This document shows, piece by piece, positions 30,241 through 48,920 of a stretch of DNA of 64,000 bases. The notes below the pieces were generated by a model. It did no database searches, was not told the DNA's origin, and was given only the letters and a program-made list of their open reading frames with translations. The DNA is from Octopus bimaculoides (taxonomy: Eukaryota). The position numbers and the translations under genes are program-made. The DNA lies in the NCBI RefSeq assembly GCF_001194135.2, contig NC_068984.1:137686590-137750589 (forward strand), read 5' to 3'. Position 1 is the stretch's first letter, and each line of letters opens with the position of its first letter.

Positions 30241-30510
30241 TTAAGGCTTGGAAGTTAGCATGAAGTATAAACAATAAAGCCATTATATTTTATCCATTAT
30301 TCGTTTAGGCGGCAAGATTGTTGCGTTTCTTCTGGTTCTTAATGTTTCGTGTCATAAAAAGAACTCTGCTGAGTTCGACGTTGCCGTTCATCCTTCTGAA
30401 GTCGATAAAATAAGTACCAGTTGAACACTGGAGCCGAAGTAATTGACTAGTACCCTCCCCTAAAACTTCAGGCTTTGTGCCTATCGTAGGAAGGATTACT
30501 ATTATTATTG

Positions 30511-30757
30511 CTCAGTAGTTTTATTTTTATAACGTGCTTTCACTTCACTACCGAGCGCAGCTCTGTGTGCCTTGGGTATGTGCTGTGGTTTGCTGTGATG
30601 CTCTTATGGTTACTGTATTGAAAGTGTTTTACGTAGGATGTGTGCAGTGCCCAGTAGTGCAATTTTCTGTATGTTATATATATTTATAAGTCCTGGTGTT
30701 TTTGTTATGTATTTGTCTGAATATTTTTTTATTATACCTAAGGCACCTACTATGATA
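30511..30757 (-). mobile_element. 5'-truncated R4/Dong-like LINE 3' end in (TAA)n
   Basis: Near-identical to 36285-36765; encodes IIVGALGIIKKYSDKYITKTPG...GTAHILRKTLSIQ*; ATT repeats on both sides. Confidence 0.85.
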
Positions 30758-31199: not shown

Positions 31200-31605
31200 C
31201 TCTTTTACTCTTTTACTTGTTTAAGTCATTTGATTGCGGCCATGCTGGAGCACCACCTTCAGTCGAGCAAATCGACCCCAGGGCTTATTCTTTGTAAGCC
31301 TAGTACTTATTCTATGGGTCTCTTTTGCCGAACCGCTAAGTTACGGGGACGTAAACACACCAGCATCGGTTGTCAAGCGATGTTGGGGGGACAAACACAC
31401 AGACACATACACCCCCCCACACACATATAGACATACATACATACATATATACGACGGGCTTCTTTCAGTTTCCGTCTACCAAATCCACTCACAAGGCTTT
31501 GGTCGGCCCGTGGCTATAGTAGAAGACACTTGCCCAAGGTGCCACGCAGTGGGACTGAACTCGGAACCATGTGGTTTGTAAGCAAGCTACTTACCACACA
31601 GCCAA
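31200..31605 (-). mobile_element. Near full-length GGCTGTGTGG-family SINE
   Basis: Reverse complement of the 37831-38290 copy, including the internal CA/TA microsatellite. Confidence 0.85.
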
Positions 31606-33429: not shown

Positions 33430-33679
33430 ATTACTCTTTTACTCTTTTTTACTTTTTTTGAGTGATTTGACCGAGGCTATGCTGCAGCACCGCCTTTGGT
33501 CGAGCAAATCGACCCCAGGACTTATTCTTTGTAAGCCTAGTACTTATTCTATCGGTTCTTTTGCCGAACCGCTAAGTTACGGGGACGGAAACACACCAGC
33601 ATCGGTTGTCAAGCGATGTTGGGGGGACAAACACAGACACACAAACATATACACACACATACATACATACATACATACA

Positions 33680-33713
<34 letters not shown>

Positions 33714-33812
33714 CGACGGGCTTCTTTCAGTTTCCTCTATCAAACCCACTCACAAGGCTTTGGTTGGCCCGAGGCTATAGCAGAAGACACTTGCCCAAGG
33801 TGCCACGCAGTG
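33430..33812 (-). mobile_element. GGCTGTGTGG-family SINE abutting an R4-like LINE just after its zinc knuckle
   Basis: Matches the family; internal (CATA)n; the LINE motif QYIH ends at the SINE boundary. Confidence 0.8.
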
Positions 33813-33814
33813 AA

Positions 33815-36250: not shown

Positions 36251-36284
36251 CGTAATAATAATAACATTATTATTATTATTATTG

Positions 36285-36761
36285 TTCAGTAGTTTTATTT
36301 TTATAACGTGCTTTCACTTCACTACCGAGCGCAGCTCTGTGCGCCTTGGGTATGTGCTGTGGTTTGCTGTGGTGATTTTATGTTTACTGTATTGAAAGTG
36401 TTTTGCGTAGAATGTGTGCAGTACCCAGTAGTGCAATTTTCTGTATGTTACATATATTTGTAAGTCCTGGTATTTTTGTTATGTATTTGTCTGAGTATTT
36501 TTTTATTATACCTAAGGCACCTACTATGATAGGAATTGTTTCTGTTTTTAGACTCCACATTCGAGTTATCTCTATTTCCAGGTCTTTGTATTTTGAAAGT
36601 TTTTCCATTTCTTTTCGAGAAACGTTGTCATCTGCTGGTATTGATACATCAATTAGAAAGCATTTTTTTCCTTCATGATCTTTGACAACTATATCTGGTC
36701 TATTTGCCTTAATTTCTCTATCTGTGTGTATTGGCATATCCCAGAGTATGGGATATGCCAA

Positions 36762-36765
<4 letters not shown>
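36285..36765 (-). mobile_element. R4/Dong-like LINE 3' end with an open RLE endonuclease frame
   Basis: YPILWDMPIHTDREIKANRPDIVVKDHEGKKCFLIDVSIP...EKLSKYKDLEIEI...GTAHILRKTLSIQ* (PD..D..K-type RLE); flanked by (ATT)n on both sides. Confidence 0.9.
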
Positions 36766-36838
<73 letters not shown>

Positions 36839-37830
36839 CCCTGATGCAGTACCAGGTAATGGCTCTCATGGCTTTTGATCTTCACAGATTGGAAGTGTTA
36901 TCATGTACATTGTTTTAGGCAAACGGTGTAAAACATCAAACCCATTTCGTAGACCCCCCCATCCTATGAAATAATACATGCTTTCTTATTCTCTCATCAG
37001 TAATATATACCAAGCAATATATACCAAGTATATTACCATCAGTAATATATACCAAGTAATATATACAACTTTGAAGTGACTGGCAGGTTTCACTTCCTTA
37101 TAAAAAATCAGTAGAAATTCTTAGCTAATGAGAGAAGGGTTTTGTTCTGCCAGGTTGGGACGAAAATGGTTGATAAGCGAAGTAATGTTGTGTAATAAAC
37201 AGTCTTTCAGATCAGTTCAAATATGTGTGGGATATTTTTGACTACGAGTAGTTAATAAAAAAAGTAGCGATAGTGTACAGTAAGATCAATGATAGTAGAG
37301 TCTGGCAATCAGGAAGTAGGTAGGATAGGAGGTAAGGGTCCAAAGGATGAAGAAGTTGAGTCAGACAATATAACTGGGGTGGTCACGTGAACGTATATTA
37401 TTTATGGTTTAAAATGGTGCAAAAAAGAAAAATCAACAAAAGACAGAGACGGATGAGGGAACGACAGAGAAGGTGTATTAGTTTCACGCTCAAGAAAAAT
37501 AGAAAAGTCTTTTACGCTTCAAGCATAGGCTCTTCTACAAAAGACACGTGTAACATGTTTAACTGTTACTCCAGATACGTTTTCTACTGTCTCCGTCTTT
37601 TCCTTCTCTCCATCTGGTTTCTCTCCTCATTCCTTTTTGTACATGAGCGTAGGCTCGAAATATCAAAAAACTCTTCCATTCTCCGTGACCGCCAAACTAG
37701 ATTAAAAGTAGTTAAATACAGTTACAGAAAAAATAATTTAGAACCTAGAGCGTAAAACTGGTAGACGATCGGTCACAGGGTGACACAGTTAGATATAGTT
37801 CTCTTTTTTGGTCTCAAATTTATGCTTATA

Positions 37831-38030
37831 GGCGCAGGAGTGGCTGTGTGGTAAGTAGCTTGCTTACCAACCACACGGTTCTGGGTTCAGTCTCACTGCG
37901 TGGCACCTTGGACATGTGTCTTCTACTATAGTCTCGGGCCGACCAAAGCCTTGTGAGTGGATTTGGCAGACGGAAACTGAACGAAGCCCGTCCTATATAT
38001 ATATATATATATATATAAGTACATATACAT

Positions 38031-38102
<72 letters not shown>

Positions 38103-38290
38103 GCATTTGTGTGTCTGTGTTTGTGCTTGACAACCGATGCTGGTATGTTTACGTCCCCGTAACTTAGCGGTTCGGCAAAACAGGCCGATAGAATAAGTAC
38201 TAGGCTCACAAAGAATAAGTCCCGGGGTTGATTAGCTCGACTAAAGGCGGTGCTCCAGCATGGACGCAGTCAAAATGACTGAAACAAATG
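37831..38290 (+). mobile_element. Full-length GGCTGTGTGG-family SINE
   Basis: GGCGCAGGAGTGGCTGTGTGG head, GGTTCAGT B-box, internal TA/CA microsatellite, tail GACTGAAACAA. Confidence 0.9.
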
Positions 38291-41771: not shown

Positions 41772-44477
41772 AGTTGACTATCTCACCATCCTCCATCACT
41801 TGACTGGTATGCATTGTATCAATCTCTAAGTGGTGAGGTGGGAGAATCGTTAACGTCTTAGGCCAAACTGTTTAAAGACGTCTATTCTGGCTCTTTACGT
41901 TTCGAGATCAAATACCGCTGAGATCAACTTTACTGTTTTTTTTATTTTCATTCGGGGGGCGATAATATAAAGCAGTCGTGTACAGGGGTCGATGTAATCC
42001 ACTAATTCGTTCCCTGTAAAATTGCTGGTCTTGTTCCAAAATTTGAAACCATTGTATCTACATCAGAAGAATGCTAGATAAAATCGATCTTCCAGAGATA
42101 GAGAAAGAAAGAGGTAGACGGACAGAGAAAAAGAGAAGAGAGAGAGAAGAACGTTAGATAAAATCAATTTTGACGGGACTCGATTTCAGATCATGAAGGG
42201 ATGTAAATAAATACAACAAGGTATTTAAATTAGTTACCTACTATCGTAGTGTATAAAATGTAAAATAATTTTTAACATTGGTACAATGAAATACACTATG
42301 TTCGTCGCACTACTGCGTATACTAATCGTAAATTCGGCGATAAGCTGGCAGAACCACTCGGGTGTCGGATAAAAATAATGTTGTGCGGTATTTGTTCCGG
42401 CCCTCTTCACACTGATTTCAAATTCCACTGACGTCAAATTTACCTTCCACCCCTTTGGGGAGTCAATGAATAAAGCACCATACTAAAAATGTGCCATTTT
42501 TTATTCTTCTCTCTCCCTTCTCTTTTTGTTCTGCCTGTCTGTCTGTCTCTTTCTTCCTCTCAGTTGTGGTTAGACCTAGATGGGAGAAGGGTTTCACCAG
42601 CGTTAAATGTCCAGGGTGAGATGCATGTCACGTCGGCGTCTCTACAACTCAAAACCTGGGACTCCCAGACAAGAATTCGCAATCGTAAATATTAAGAAAA
42701 GGAATGAAATAAGGAATATGGAAAGCCATACCTGAAATAAGACACGACATTGAACTAATATACATGCGTGGCTTTGTAGTAAGAAGTTTACTTCCCAATC
42801 TCATGGTATCAGGTTCAATCCCACTGCATGGCACTGTGGGCAAGTGTCTTCTACTGTAGCTAAGAGCCGATCAAAGACTTTTGAGTGGATTTGGTCGACA
42901 GAAACTGAAAGAAGCCTGCCATATATATATGTATGTGTGTGTGTATGTGTGCGACTTTATGCCTGTGTTTATGTCCCCTAGCGTTTGAAAACAAGTGTTG
43001 GTTTGTTTATGTACCCATAAGGTAGCGGTTCGCCAAAAGAGAACCGATAGAACAAGTAAAAAGTTTTAAAGAAATAAGTACTANNNNNNNNNNNNNNNNN
43101 NNNNNNNNNNNNNNNNNNNNNNNNNNNNNNNNNNNNNNNNNNNNNNNNNNNNNNNNNNNNNNNNNNNNNNNNNNNNNNNNNNNNNNNNNNNNNNNNNNNN
43201 NNNNNNNNNNNNNNNNNNNNNNNNNNNNNNNNNNNNNNNNNNNNNNNNNNNNNNNNNNNNNNNNNNNNNNNNNNNNNNNNNNNNNNNNNNNNNNNNNNNN
43301 NNNNNNNNNNNNNNNNNNNNNNNNNNNNNNNNNNNNNNNNNNNNNNNNNNNNNNNNNNNNNNNNNNNNNNNNNNNNNNNNNNNNNNNNNNNNNNNNNNNN
43401 NNNNNNNNNNNNNNNNNNNNNNNNNNNNNNNNNNNNNNNNNNNNNNNNNNNNNNNNNNNNNNNNNNNNNNNNNNNNNNNNNNNNNNNNNNNNNNNNNNNN
43501 NNNNNNNNNNNNNNNNNNNNNNNNNNNNNNNNNNNNNNNNNNNNNNNNNNNNNNNNNNNNNNNNNNNNNNNNNNNNNNNNNNNNNNNNNNNNNNNNNNNN
43601 NNNNNNNNNNNNNNNNNNNNNNNNNNNNNNNNNNNNNNNNNNNNNNNNNNNNNNNNNNNNNNNNNNNNNNNNNNNNNNNNNNNNNNNNNNNNNNNNNNNN
43701 NNNNNNNNNNNNNNNNNNNNNNNNNNNNNNNNNNNNNNNNNNNNNNNNNNNNNNNNNNNNNNNNNNNNNNNNNNNNNNNNNNNNNNNNNNNNNNNNNNNN
43801 NNNNNNNNNNNNNNNNNNNNNNNNNNNNNNNNNNNNNNNNNNNNNNNNNNNNNNNNNNNNNNNNNNNNNNNNNNNNNNNNNNNNNNNNNNNNNNNNNNNN
43901 NNNNNNNNNNNNNNNNNNNNNNNNNTATATATATACATATATATATATGTACATATATATATATGTATATATACATACATACACATGTATATACACATGC
44001 ATGTAAAAGTATAATATATATATATATATGCATATATATTTATGCGTGTGTGCATATACGTGCGTGTATGCGTGGCTGTATTTAAATATATACGTATATG
44101 TATTTAGACAAATTATACATGCATATATGCGCACATTACGTACCTATAATTACACTCGAATTTACAAGTGTATGCTTAAATGCATGTACATATATGCATA
44201 TTTTACTCGTGTGTGTGTATGTAAGTACGTGTACCTGCGTGTGTATTTGTATGTGTGCGTGTGTTGGGGATGTATTTTATAAGTAGGAATGTTAGAGATA
44301 TTGCAGTCAATCTGAATATTCTATCCGAAATCGTGGGTCATATTTACAAACTCCATTGTCTGAACTTATTTGCATGGATACATGTTATATTTTATGATCG
44401 CCAATTTAAATTTACTTCTTACTAAATCTCACCATTTTCCCACAGTTTCTTCATTAAGCTCTTTGGCTTTTATTTTC

Positions 44478-45104
44478 TTATTTCCGGCCGATGTCCAAAA
44501 GTTTTTCCCTGATTTTATTTTTCTCCATTCGTTTTCGTGACTCTTCCAGAATTCTTGCGATTGCCGTGAGTGGTGCGTTGATCGAGTAACCTTGACGCCT
44601 GTTCATCATATGTCTATCGTTATTAGTGATCCAGCACCTACACACTGGGTCAAAAAAGGGTTCATTTTCAAAGTCGTCTTTTGTGATGCTGTAAAGATCT
44701 TTGTTCGTGGATGTGTCTTGTCTTTTCTGCAAAGCTGGATACAATGTTAACAACTTCAATTTCTTCTCGCCATCAGTCTTCGTAGCAATATTACCATTGT
44801 CATTATTATAGTAATATTCGTCGTTGTTCTTACCCAAGTCCTCTTCGACGTCATTGCTGTTTATATCATTTTGAATTTTATATAGAAGTTGTTTAGTTTT
44901 AGAACCTTCGCCAGTAACACCCCCACTGTCATCAAAGTCACTGCGAAATGTGCCGTCGTCGTAGGCAGATAATTTTTTATCTCCAGTTTCGTAATCATTG
45001 GAAAGGAATACTGAGTTTAAAGTGTCAGGCCGATTTCTGCATAGAACCATATTTGGAATCATTAGAGAAAGTAGTACTGACATTATAAGTATTGATTTCA
45101 ACAT
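44478..45104 (-). CDS. ELH: Egg-laying hormone (ELH)/CRF/DH44-family neuropeptide precursor, 208 aa
   Basis: GCCACC-ATG at 45104; hydrophobic leader MLKSILIMSVLLSLMIPNMVLC; acidic spacer; KR and RR sites; C-terminal QGYSINAPLTAIARILEESRKRMEKNKIREKLLDI-GRK*. It aligns by eye with Aplysia ELH (ISINQDLKAITDML...RQRLLEK-amide). The 34 extra N-terminal residues in the ORF track span an intron 3' end (T-tract CTATTTACAG| at 45141). Confidence 0.88.
   Translation of the reverse strand: MLKSILIMSVLLSLMIPNMVLCRNRPDTLNSVFLSNDYETGDKKLSAYDDGTFRSDFDDSGGVTGEGSKTKQLLYKIQNDINSNDVEEDLGKNNDEYYYNNDNGNIATKTDGEKKLKLLTLYPALQKRQDTSTNKDLYSITKDDFENEPFFDPVCRCWITNNDRHMMNRRQGYSINAPLTAIARILEESRKRMEKNKIREKLLDIGRK
44490..44594 (-). 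other. Predicted mature ELH/CRF-like peptide, 35 aa (possible pyroGlu, C-terminal amide)
   Basis: Preceded by RR (44595-44600) and followed by G-R-K-stop, the amidation and cleavage signal. It has the S-I-N-x-x-L motif typical of CRF/DH44/ELH peptides. Confidence 0.8.
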
Positions 45105-45272
45105 GGTGGCACGAAAATTATTCAAAAAATTGGTCAATCTCTGTAAATAGAAAAAAAAAGAACGAAAATATAGACACAAAAGATATATGTAAATATATAA
45201 AAACAAAAGGATAAAGAGAGCAAAGGTAAGGTTGAAGAATTATTAATTTAAAGGCACTAGGAAGAAATAATT

Positions 45273-45305
<33 letters not shown>

Positions 45306-45339
45306 GCAACAACAACAACAACAATAGTAATGGTTTCAA

Positions 45340-47705: not shown

Positions 47706-48442
47706 NNNNNNNNNNNNNNNNNNNNNNNNNNNNNNNNNNNNNNNNNNNNNNNNNNNNNNNNNNNNNNNNNNNNNNNNNNNNNNNNNNNNNNNNNNNNNNN
47801 NNNNNNNNNNNNNNNNNNNNNNNNNNNNNNTATATATAAAAGGGTAAAGGTACGTTCTCGAGTCATGTCGACACATAAGAGCCGGTTTCCCCTTTTATCA
47901 TGGCGTATAAATTCCTCACCTCGATGGAACGCCGGTCCGTCAGAGGATCACTAATTTTTGCCAGCTGAGTGGACTGGAGCAACGTGAAATGAAGTGGTTT
48001 GCTCAAGAACACAACGTATCACCTAGTCCAAGAATTGAAACCACAATCTTACGATCATGAGTCCAACACCCTAACCACTAAGCCATACGCTTCTACATTT
48101 AATCAAATATCACTTTACAGAGCAAACATCAAATACTTTTAGTGGTGAATATGAAAAGGGAGTAGAGGAGTAGAAAATAGCACTTCCATTTTTTGTGTGG
48201 ATGAGGACCACGGAACTTAAGTACGCATTGAAAAAGTTAAATAATTCACTCCAAAGTTAGATCCAAGCTTCAACAAACGCTGATTTTCTTTCTGTTTCTA
48301 TAGTAGTCCAGCACATAAAAAAAAAGGTAATGAAATTAAAATTAACAACAGAGCCGCAGAAAAATTAGTGGTTATTTACGTTGGTAAGAAAATTGTAGAG
48401 TGAATTTCGTGAGTCTGGATGTCCTTATATATCGCTGTCGTG

Positions 48443-48920
48443 TGAAGAGAAGGAATCAGACGTACAATGGCTCTAAAGCCTTTGAGAACTTCAAGAAACG
48501 TAGCTCACAAGCAAAACCCGTTTACTATGTCTCTTATAAAAAGATACCAGCTAAGTTGCTTGTGCGGAATCCATCAGTCTTTTATCACTTGGATAAGAAG
48601 TTTCGTCAGACCGTTCATCTGTAGTCTGTACCGATGGCTTCCACTCCGATTCTTATTCTATAAATTCTACATATGCTGGGAAAGAGAAGAAATCGGACGT
48701 ACAATGGCTCTAAAGCCCTTGAGAACTTCAAGAAAATAGGTCACAAGCAAAACCTTTTACTGTGTCTCTTATGAAAAGATGCCAGCTAAGTTGCTTGTGC
48801 GGAATCCATCAGTCTTTTATCACTTGGATAAGGAGTTTCGTCAGACCGTTCATCTGTAGTGTGTACCGATGGCTTCCACTCCGATTCTTATTCTATAAAT
48901 TTTACAGATGCTGGGAAAAG
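48443..48920. repeat. Tandem duplication of about 237 bp
   Basis: ACAATGGCTC at 48464 and 48701, with high identity across the unit. Confidence 0.9.

Follow-up and report, generated by a model that had tools for sequence, protein, structure and literature searches.

A probable single-copy prepro-hormone gene of the DH44/egg-laying-hormone/CRF family in octopods

In a 64,000-nucleotide stretch of Octopus bimaculoides chromosome CM046604.1 (hereafter the window), we found an intact 208-codon open reading frame (ORF) on the minus strand that probably represents a functional, single-copy octopod prepro-hormone gene of the DH44/egg-laying-hormone/CRF family, closest to the lophotrochozoan DH44 type (Table 1). 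This assignment is supported by an end-to-end profile match, by shuffled sequences that stay below the observed score, by the logic of the precursor and by matching receptors in the genome. It places the precursor in the wider published superfamily only, by way of the lophotrochozoan clade, and not under the curated Pfam CRF and ELH models.

Table 1. Features of the octopod prepro-hormone gene, in window positions
Feature	Position	Strand	Remarks
Prepro-hormone, complete coding sequence (CDS)	44478..45104	-	208 codons + TAA; intact in O. sinensis and a third octopod
5'-UTR portion of the coding exon (probable), with GCCACC Kozak context	45105..45140	-	near-identical in the third octopod
Predicted signal peptide, aa 1-22 (MLKSILIMSVLLSLMIPNMVLC)	45039..45104	-	sole strongly hydrophobic stretch
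Acidic Asn/Asp/Tyr-rich pro-region, aa 23-170	44595..45038	-	candidate sites KK43-44, KK114-115, KR127-128
Predicted mature hormone, aa 171-205, (p)QGYSINAPLTAIARILEESRKRMEKNKIREKLLDI-NH2	44490..44594	-	35 residues, RR to GRK
Gly206-Arg207-Lys208, predicted amidation donor and carboxypeptidase-removed basic residues	44481..44489	-	read from the sequence
Conserved 3' flank	44210..44477	-	86% identity to the third octopod over 268 nt

The ORF runs from an ATG at 45104 to a TAA at 44480-44478, encodes a 208-aa product and apparently holds the whole coding sequence in a single exon. A first-pass annotation had described a complete prepropeptide here, with a Kozak context, a signal peptide, dibasic sites, a Gly-Arg-Lys end and one terminal 35-aa peptide, and each of these elements was recovered: the ORF lies exactly where it had been placed, the Kozak context GCCACCATG is present at 45110-45102, and QGYSINAPLTAIARILEESRKRMEKNKIREKLLDI stands between RR and GRK as written. 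Directly ahead of the 5' portion of the exon lie a conserved polypyrimidine tract and TTTACAG (minus strand), a putative 3' splice site with the intron AG at 45142-45141, and the segment between it and the ATG is a probable 5' UTR. The conserved 3' flank is probably the 3' UTR, extending up to a (CA)n microsatellite. Vertebrate CRH genes carry their coding sequence in one exon behind a 5'-UTR intron, an arrangement that the octopus gene, with its predicted 5'-UTR intron, resembles. A search for CRE motifs returned a single site, downstream of the gene, which is no more than expected by chance.

The signal peptide was called heuristically from hydropathy (mean Kyte-Doolittle value of +1.97 for the N-terminal 22 residues vs -1.15 for the remainder), and its cleavage would fall after Cys22. 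In addition to the three candidate sites of the pro-region, the precursor has basic sites at RR169-170, which closes the pro-region, at RKR190-192 and in the terminal G206-R207-K208, so that it ends in ...LLDI-Gly-Arg-Lys-stop and the predicted peptide ends in Ile. The RKR is internal to the hormone, and a basic cluster at this place is conserved across the family alignment. The pro-region contains a CxC motif at 155/157 and yielded no homologue and no family match in general protein and Pfam searches. Modelled with AlphaFold, the precursor reaches a mean pLDDT of 34.7; confidence is low across the pro-region, and the model is uninformative save for a weak helix at 179-207. The hydrophobic moment of the peptide is not above that of shuffles, so we do not claim an amphipathic helix.

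The family assignment was examined with a hidden Markov model (HMM) of 25 mature lophotrochozoan DH44/ELH units (De Oliveira et al., 2019, PMC6425005, Supplementary note S2), built without octopus sequences and without the flanking processing signals. This family HMM gave 22.0 bits for the peptide alone and 16.3 bits within the precursor (p = 4.6e-7), where the match was confined to aa 174-202, and the observed scores were reached by 0 of 100,000 shuffles of the peptide and 0 of 50,000 shuffles of the precursor. The next best of 1,272 ORF segments in the window obtained 4.3 bits, reversed sequences about 0 bits and the third octopod 11.5 bits. Accepted members scored with their own clade left out obtained 3-47 bits (median about 21), a range that makes the octopus score typical of a member, and when the three most similar units were removed from the HMM the octopus peptide still obtained 19.4 bits. 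The precursor has one positive domain, hence a single hormone copy as first proposed, and with the same HMM neither the 1,641 six-frame segments of the window nor the O. sinensis locus yielded a second copy or paralogue. Profile comparison with hhalign gave a probability of 95.7% for the peptide and 91.8% for the full precursor over 38 columns, with an aligned span of aa 171-208. The BLASTP check that had been proposed at the outset matched the Lottia ELH precursor from the dibasic site to GKR, with 18/45 identities (40%) and E = 3e-7 for this single comparison. In the joint alignment, the Ser and Leu that hardly vary across the family, the basic cluster in the centre and the R-x-K-L-L-x-I at the C-terminus are all in register, and the amidation Gly column is invariant across the 27 sequences of the family alignment. 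At the scale of a proteome (about 30,000 proteins), 16.3 bits corresponds to E of about 0.01 and the 11.5 bits of the third species to about 0.4; given these modest values, the case rests on the a-priori test of a single candidate and on positional agreement.

Profiles built from subsets of the family suggest where within it the peptide belongs. A non-gastropod DH44-only HMM gave the highest score, 25.6 bits (reached by 0/20,000 shuffles), a non-mollusc-only HMM a weak 5.6 bits, and a gastropod-ELH-only HMM a non-significant 4.6 bits (reached by 510/20,000 shuffles). The ELH/CRF/DH44 label of the first-pass annotation therefore stands as regards the lophotrochozoan DH44/ELH profile, and its "ELH" is correct at family level only, since the peptide groups with non-gastropod DH44 and not with gastropod ELH. 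Judged by its sequence, the octopus peptide is outside the gastropod ELH clade sensu De Oliveira et al. (2019) and of the non-gastropod lophotrochozoan DH44 type. The precursors of this closest type, known from bivalves, scaphopods, chitons, annelids and nemerteans (PMC6425005; Thiel et al., 2021, PMC8557429), share with it 31-42 residues between a dibasic site and Gly-Lys/Arg, an amide on a hydrophobic residue, a [LFY]-S-[IVL]-N-x-x-L-x-x-[LI]-A motif at the N-terminus, a cluster of basic residues in the centre and R-x-[KR]-L-x-x-[LI] at the C-terminus, and the Pro of the octopus SINAPL recurs in the third copy of the scaphopod precursors (SINGPL / SVNGPL). They differ in copy number, with two or three copies in non-gastropod molluscs and up to 16 in Platynereis against one at the extreme C-terminus in the octopus, and they have no counterpart of its long acidic Asn/Asp/Tyr-rich pro-region. 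With gastropod ELH (Aplysia ELH, Lymnaea CDCH, Lottia ELH) the octopus precursor shares a single hormone copy and an amidated peptide of about 36 residues, and the Lottia precursor is the best single pairwise match of the peptide (Smith-Waterman score 62); the bag-cell-peptide and RLRF-type repeats found upstream of ELH in Aplysia and Lymnaea are absent.

Arthropod DH44 and vertebrate CRF, urocortin and sauvagine resemble the octopus peptide in length class and in C-terminal amidation on Ile/Val, yet direct similarity is weak and pairwise scores are mostly not significant. An N-terminal S-I-x-x-P-L-like motif, which we take to be present in insect DH44 as well, serves as a lead only. A hand-assembled HMM of nine arthropod DH44/vertebrate CRF-type peptides gave 4.5 bits for O. 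bimaculoides and 16.4 bits for the third octopod. Both pairwise and HMM comparison place the octopus peptide nearer the lophotrochozoan than the arthropod type. Its homology to CRF rests on the published link of ELH/DH44 to CRF, which is credited to Mirabeau and Joly (2013) and Jekely (2013).

Generic searches were silent on this relationship. At E<=10 a Pfam scan of the precursor, which took in the CRF and ELH models, returned 0 families, and the gathering thresholds of these two models were not reached; a sequence search of the PDB with the peptide found no CRF/urocortin peptide at E<=10, only coiled-coil noise. The first-pass annotation had named the lack of a CRF/ELH profile match as a refuting outcome; curated Pfam does show this lack, PDB CRF/urocortin peptides give no match either, and the match comes from the purpose-built lophotrochozoan profile only. 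HMMER with a two-octopus profile against 1.84 billion representative proteins found nothing outside octopods at E<=0.001, decapodiform or Nautilus relatives included, and a word-indexed homology search of 5.8 billion proteins found only the protein itself and one orthologue (85%). A mixed octopus and family profile produced three matches (bivalve-like, annelid-like and Lymnaea CDCH) and no cephalopod match. The peptide has no exact 5-residue word in common with other family members, which is probably why BLAST-type surveys missed the gene.

The first-pass annotation had spoken of a cephalopod prohormone, a label that we can support for three octopods, O. bimaculoides, O. sinensis and a further species, and no wider. 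In these three species the ORF is intact, with one in-frame codon indel, and amino acid identity of the precursor to that of O. bimaculoides is 97% in O. sinensis and 86% in the third octopod. With dS of 0.14-0.35 among the three, dN/dS is 0.10 between O. bimaculoides and O. sinensis and 0.19-0.25 against the third octopod, and nucleotide identity to the latter is 90% in the CDS and 78-86% in the flanks (5' flank overall 78%). The ORF is under purifying selection. It is also the longest among the window ORFs free of assembly gaps, and this, together with its integrity in three species, the low dN/dS and the contrast between CDS and flanks, sets it beyond chance. Constraint is distributed unevenly: 21/22 residues of the signal peptide are invariant across the three species, and the pro-region shows unexpectedly strong constraint (omega 0.15-0.19). 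The predicted hormone is identical in O. bimaculoides and O. sinensis but has 9/35 residues changed in the third octopod (omega 0.43-0.67), where it is less conserved than the pro-region, which is unusual for a bioactive peptide. In this third species the N-terminal cleavage site reads KRRR, with the start of the peptide moved downstream by one residue and its length 34 aa. The four contigs that carry the third orthologue were considered as transcripts and rejected as such, being colinear with the genome past the putative intron end; they end in microsatellites, which identifies them as genomic contigs.

A Mytilus CRHR query retrieved two O. bimaculoides paralogues, XP_014771477.1 and XP_014778785.1, which are 54% identical to each other, and this receptor set has orthologues in O. 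sinensis, O. vulgaris and Argonauta. As the supplement of Cardoso et al. (2020) does not state which O. bimaculoides family-B receptor is of the CRHR type, we tested receptor identity directly by sequence. Among solved structures, both match human CRF1R/CRF2R best (290-312 bits), about 90-100 bits above the next receptor family, PTH1R (200-215 bits), which argues that both are CRF/DH44-type class-B GPCRs.

That the octopus peptide is expressed, how it is in fact processed, which receptor it pairs with and what it does physiologically are matters that we infer only. We propose that the signal peptide would direct the precursor into the secretory pathway, where prohormone convertases would cleave after Arg169-Arg170 and possibly also at the three upstream dibasic sites. 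Arg207 and Lys208 would then be trimmed by a carboxypeptidase, Gly206 would be converted by peptidylglycine alpha-amidating monooxygenase into a C-terminal amide on Ile205, and the N-terminal Gln may cyclise to pyroglutamate; the computed monoisotopic mass of the amidated 35-residue peptide is 4095.31 Da, or 4078.28 Da in the pyroGlu form. The peptide is predicted to act on XP_014771477.1 and/or XP_014778785.1 according to the two-domain class-B model, in which the extracellular hormone-binding domain would bind the C-terminal helix of the peptide, and activation of the transmembrane core, with a rise in cAMP, would fall to the conserved N-terminal YSINAPL segment. The role in spawning, brooding or stress that the first-pass annotation suggested is speculative.

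Three other explanations have to be weighed against a DH44/ELH/CRF hormone gene. The peptide could be an octopod-specific, secreted and amidated product unrelated to this family, its likeness being convergent or reflecting generic helical, basic and amidated properties. The absence of homologues outside octopods in general searches and the silence of the Pfam CRF and ELH models agree with this, as do the modest scores (11.5-22 bits) in a family that is short and divergent and the lack of significance with subset profiles such as gastropod ELH only. We nevertheless consider it unlikely, because neither composition-preserving shuffles nor reversed sequences ever came near the observed score, which lies within the leave-clade-out range of accepted members, because the match spans the cleavage to the amidation site with Ser, Leu, basic cluster and C-terminal motif in register, and because the genome keeps receptors that need such a ligand. 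The same receptors, two endogenous proteins with no other known ligand, weigh against a venom "doppelganger" of the salivary gland, derived from or mimicking DH44/ELH and aimed at receptors of crustacean or molluscan prey, which we regard as very unlikely. Neuropeptide mimics such as tachykinins are known octopus secretions, the hormone has changed quickly in one lineage alongside a constrained pro-region, a pattern that is often toxin-like, and the peptide is missing from reports of cephalopod CNS neuropeptide surveys. However, it is identical in O. bimaculoides and O. sinensis and more lophotrochozoan-like than arthropod-like, and a 2026 preprint that screened cephalopod salivary-gland transcriptomes with profile HMMs, crustacean DH44 among them, reported mimics of tachykinin, neurotensin, luqin and myosuppressin only.

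The remaining explanation is a conserved but untranscribed or non-functional ORF, whether through faulty annotation or as a recent pseudogene. Records of the exact protein exist for a single contig, the chromosome, and those of the third orthologue for genomic contigs only, which would fit this; against it stand the integrity of the ORF in three species despite their synonymous divergence, dN/dS of 0.10-0.25, sequence conservation at the Kozak context, at the putative splice acceptor and along the 3' flank, and two transcript isoforms modelled by RefSeq for the O. sinensis gene ("uncharacterized protein LOC115210874"), and we give this explanation hardly any weight.

A hormone gene of the DH44/ELH/CRF family in octopods revises a published inference of gene loss. 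De Oliveira et al. (2019; PMC6425005) retrieved ELH/DH44 from none of their cephalopod databases, which included the O. bimaculoides proteome, the Sepia CNS and the Euprymna genome, and inferred a probable loss in the lineage. In the open literature that we searched, we found no paper describing the gene. Databases list its product as an uncharacterized protein, and database sources suggest that the protein was already in an early O. bimaculoides protein set, unnamed. Its escape from BLAST, Pfam and database-scale HMMER is a methodological caution for short, fast-evolving peptide genes, which clade-specific profiles combined with precursor anatomy can recover. A wider proposal, which we advance tentatively and think doubtful as a whole, is that DH44/ELH/CRF signalling was kept and not lost in cephalopods, with the divergent single-copy ligand and duplicated receptor pair of octopods forming a neuroendocrine signal that feeds into reproduction, the arrest of feeding or stress (placed, for instance, upstream of the optic-gland programme of brooding and death or in parallel with it), and with the constrained acidic pro-region perhaps adding new bioactive products. 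The octopus peptide is a candidate ligand for two octopod CRF/DH44-type receptors that have no reported ligand, and a defined peptide with two receptors makes it possible to test whether the egg-laying/stress system of molluscs operates when octopuses reproduce, brood and stop feeding. It is likewise a molecular candidate behind the CRF-like immunoreactivity described in 2003 in the optic lobe as well as the peduncle complex of O. vulgaris, as that work is cited in PMC12607849. One of the two octopod CRF/DH44-type receptors was found at higher expression in the white body and heart of female O. maya (PMC6522055).

The window maps to chromosome CM046604.1 of assembly GCA_001194135.2, near 137.7 Mb, and we found in it every ORF and precursor element listed by the first-pass annotation, which had proposed a single-copy cephalopod ELH/CRF/DH44 prohormone. 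The hormone ORF is the longest in the window among those not crossing an assembly gap, and its start codon lies in the context GCCACCATG; the remainder of the 64 kb consists of microsatellites, interspersed repeats and ten N-gaps. The sole hydrophobic segment of the precursor comprises residues 1-22 (mean Kyte-Doolittle +1.97 vs -1.15 elsewhere), heuristically a signal peptide. It is followed by a long, acidic, Asn/Asp/Tyr-rich pro-region with KK43-44, KK114-115 and KR127-128, and the C-terminus reads RR169-170, QGYSINAPLTAIARILEESRKRMEKNKIREKLLDI and Gly-Arg-Lys-stop. As had been proposed, the hormone is present once: neither the window nor 20 kb of the O. sinensis locus contains a second copy. 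A polypyrimidine tract with TTTACAG lies 36 nt 5' of the ATG, nearly perfectly conserved in contigs of a third octopod species; this is a putative 3' splice site, which would place the entire CDS in the last exon. Identity between O. bimaculoides and O. sinensis peaks at 91-94% (vs ~84-87% in the background) in islands 2.7-3.6 kb 5' of the ATG, which are candidate sites of the hormone gene's 5' exon and promoter. The largest assembly gap starts ~550 nt downstream of the stop codon, so the transcript 3' end and downstream elements may be incompletely assembled.

Coordinates of the hormone gene and of other features in the window
Feature	Position	Strand or orientation	Remarks
CDS	44478-45104	minus	ATG at 45104, TAA at 44480-44478; 208 codons
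Pro-region (aa 23-170)	44595-45038	minus	without homologue; three further dibasic sites, CxC motif
(TG)n microsatellite	~44200-44270		flanks hormone gene
(AAT)n/(CAA)n	~45270-45320		flanks hormone gene
Identity islands	47838-48683		L005 6422-7267
Interspersed repeat, ~350-400 nt	31217-31604, 33454-33813	direct
Interspersed repeat, ~350-400 nt	37841-38274	inverted
Related fragment	near 43007-43080
263-nt repeat pair	30495-30757, 36269-36531		95% identity
161-aa ORF	36384-36869	minus	beside (ATT)n tract
Largest assembly gap	43084-43925
Nine further N runs	1745, 7186, 8133, 10231, 22947, 28105, 47706, 49383, 53258

A Pfam scan of the precursor gave zero families at E<=10, octopod orthologues were the only hits of a word-indexed search of 5.8 billion proteins and of a HMMER scan run in full over 1.84 billion representatives, and a PDB sequence search with the peptide matched no solved CRF-family peptide. 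De Oliveira et al., 2019 provide DH44/ELH precursors of bivalves, scaphopods, chiton, gastropods, Platynereis and nemerteans (Supplementary note S2; PMC6425005), and our family HMM was built from 25 of their mature units, leaving out octopus and the cleavage and amidation residues. With this HMM, the score was 22.0 bits for the O. bimaculoides peptide alone and, for the whole precursor, 16.3 bits (p = 4.6e-7, one sequence), the single positive domain being aa 174-202, within the predicted hormone; the third octopod gave 16.1 and 11.5 bits, respectively. Top scores of shuffles were <=15.2 bits for the peptide (n=100,000) and <=14.8 bits for the precursor (n=50,000), reversed sequences scored ~0 bits, and the hormone ORF, at 17.4 bits, led the window's 1,272 six-frame segments, the second best of which had 4.3. 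Since accepted members scored 3.1-46.7 bits (median ~21) with their own clade left out, the octopus peptide appears to be a divergent but ordinary member. The proteome-scale E of the precursor match is ~0.01, so that the case is strongest as an a priori test of one anatomically defined candidate. In a profile-profile comparison over 38 columns, the peptide matched with 95.7% probability (P = 9.5e-9) and the full precursor with 91.8%. BLASTP of the last 47 residues against the Lottia ELH precursor gave a 45-residue alignment that spans the dibasic site through GKR, with 40% identity and a single-comparison E of 3e-7. The joint family alignment holds in register a near-invariant Ser and Leu, an invariant Gly, the C-terminal R-x-K-L-L-x-I-G-basic and a central basic cluster, which explains the internal RKR of the octopus hormone.

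Subset HMMs gave the peptide 19.4 bits (all units minus the three closest), 25.6 bits (non-gastropod units only) and 13.7 bits (bivalve units only), scores reached by 0/20,000 shuffles each, as well as 5.6 bits (non-mollusc units only; 59/20,000) and 4.6 bits (gastropod ELH only; 510/20,000, not significant). An HMM of nine arthropod/vertebrate peptides, whose scores are a lead only, gave 4.5 bits for O. bimaculoides (565/20,000) and 16.4 for the third octopod. From these profiles, we conclude that the peptide is an ELH/DH44/CRF family member and falls in its lophotrochozoan DH44 clade. The proposed family membership is thus borne out by the lophotrochozoan profile, the profile-profile comparison and the Lottia ELH match, and the ELH label holds for the family (22.0 bits) but not for the gastropod ELH type (4.6 bits). 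A missing CRF/ELH profile match, named earlier as counting against the proposal, was seen with curated profiles but not with the purpose-built HMM (22.0 bits). Kinship with CRF, also claimed, follows from published work rather than from direct similarity (no PDB or Pfam match): later papers credit the tie of ELH/DH44 to CRF to Mirabeau and Joly, 2013 and Jekely, 2013.

Two orthologues were present in the protein collection. That of O. sinensis (XP_029635498.1 / XP_029635499.1, "uncharacterized protein LOC115210874") is 97% identical overall, with an identical predicted hormone; that of the third octopod (runs SRR11869384-94) has 207 residues and 86% identity. The third-octopod contigs are colinear with the window (45287 -> 44210, 87% identity) and terminate in microsatellites, which rules out transcripts and marks them as genomic DNA. 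Nucleotide identity to this species is 90% in the CDS, 78% in the 5' flank and 86% in the 3' flank. Across the three species, dS is 0.14-0.35 and the precursors differ in length by a single in-frame codon. Nei-Gojobori dN/dS is 0.10 between O. bimaculoides and O. sinensis and 0.19-0.25 against the third octopod, values that contradict a non-functional ORF; the three-species comparison shows the ORF to be a real gene under constraint. Convergent resemblance to the DH44/ELH family is unlikely, given the shuffle, reversal and register evidence. Omega is 0.15-0.19 for the pro-region, vs 0.43-0.67 for the hormone in the third octopod's lineage. There, 9 of 35 hormone residues changed, most of them to similar ones, and the segments GYSINAPLT, LEESRKRME and KLL-x-IGRK are invariant. 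Such faster evolution of the peptide would fit a salivary "doppelganger" toxin, a conceivable alternative to a hormone; however, the peptide is identical in O. bimaculoides and O. sinensis, and a 2026 preprint applying neuropeptide HMMs, including crustacean DH44, to cephalopod salivary transcriptomes reported no DH44 mimic. The tighter constraint on the pro-region across the three species may reflect either a function of its own or co-evolution of the ligand with duplicated receptors, and its extra dibasic sites and CxC motif suggest that it may give additional products.

For a DH44-type hormone, the sequence contains the processing signals, from which we infer the steps: the signal peptide would be cut off, convertases would cut C-terminal to RR170, a carboxypeptidase would trim R207 and K208, and Gly206 would yield the Ile205 amide. 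The N-terminal Gln may cyclise (calculated monoisotopic masses 4095.31 Da for the mature peptide and 4078.28 Da for the pyroGlu form). In the third octopod, the cleavage site is KRRR and the peptide begins at Gly. DH44, ELH-family and CRF peptides raise cAMP through class-B receptors; by family membership, the octopus peptide most likely acts on one or both octopus CRF/DH44-type receptors, as an agonist that would raise cAMP; egg laying, brooding, feeding arrest, diuresis and stress are all possible roles. Using Mytilus CRHR (supplement of Cardoso et al., 2020; PMC7200681) as query, 119 of the best 120 matches were named CRF receptor or diuretic-hormone receptor, or were nameless, and O. vulgaris, O. 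sinensis and Argonauta proteins were among these 120. Cluster look-up yielded two O. bimaculoides genes, XP_014771477.1 and XP_014778785.1 (with isoforms), 54% identical, on different chromosomes and outside the window, each with orthologues in O. sinensis and O. vulgaris. Top solved-structure matches of both were human CRF1R/CRF2R (290-312 bits), then PTH1R (200-215). These matches indicate that the CRF/DH44 receptor side is present and duplicated in octopods. Cardoso et al., 2020 described a unique CRHR-like gene in molluscs. An O. maya CRHR2-like transcript was reported to be expressed more highly in female white body and heart (PMC6522055), and CRF-like immunoreactivity in the O. vulgaris optic lobe and peduncle complex is attributed to Suzuki et al., 2003 in PMC12607849.

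None of the cephalopod databases used by De Oliveira et al., 2019, among them the predicted proteins of O. bimaculoides, CNS transcriptomes of Sepia and the genome of Euprymna, gave an ELH/DH44 sequence, and these authors inferred that loss in Cephalopoda was likely (PMC6425005). The octopus peptide, with evidence from three octopod species, revises this inference and is a candidate ligand for two receptors without one. Because the precursor is recorded in NCBI, UniRef, EukProt and MetaClust, we take the early protein set of O. bimaculoides to have included it already, as an entry that BLAST-type searches could not recognise. A word-indexed profile search gave zero octopus proteins, and the peptide thus appears to have no exact 5-residue word in common with other members. 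The gene was not described in the openly accessible literature searched by peptide string, accessions, and family plus cephalopod names.

The window yielded no tRNA genes. Copies of the ~350-400-nt interspersed repeat, probably a SINE-like element, are 84-91% identical, contain an internal (CA/TA)n tract and give rise to the recurring pseudo-ORF FAEPLSYGDVNTPASVVKRCWGDKH. One copy of the 263-nt repeat overlaps the 161-aa ORF, which has no Pfam match and resembles the tail of a retroelement protein.
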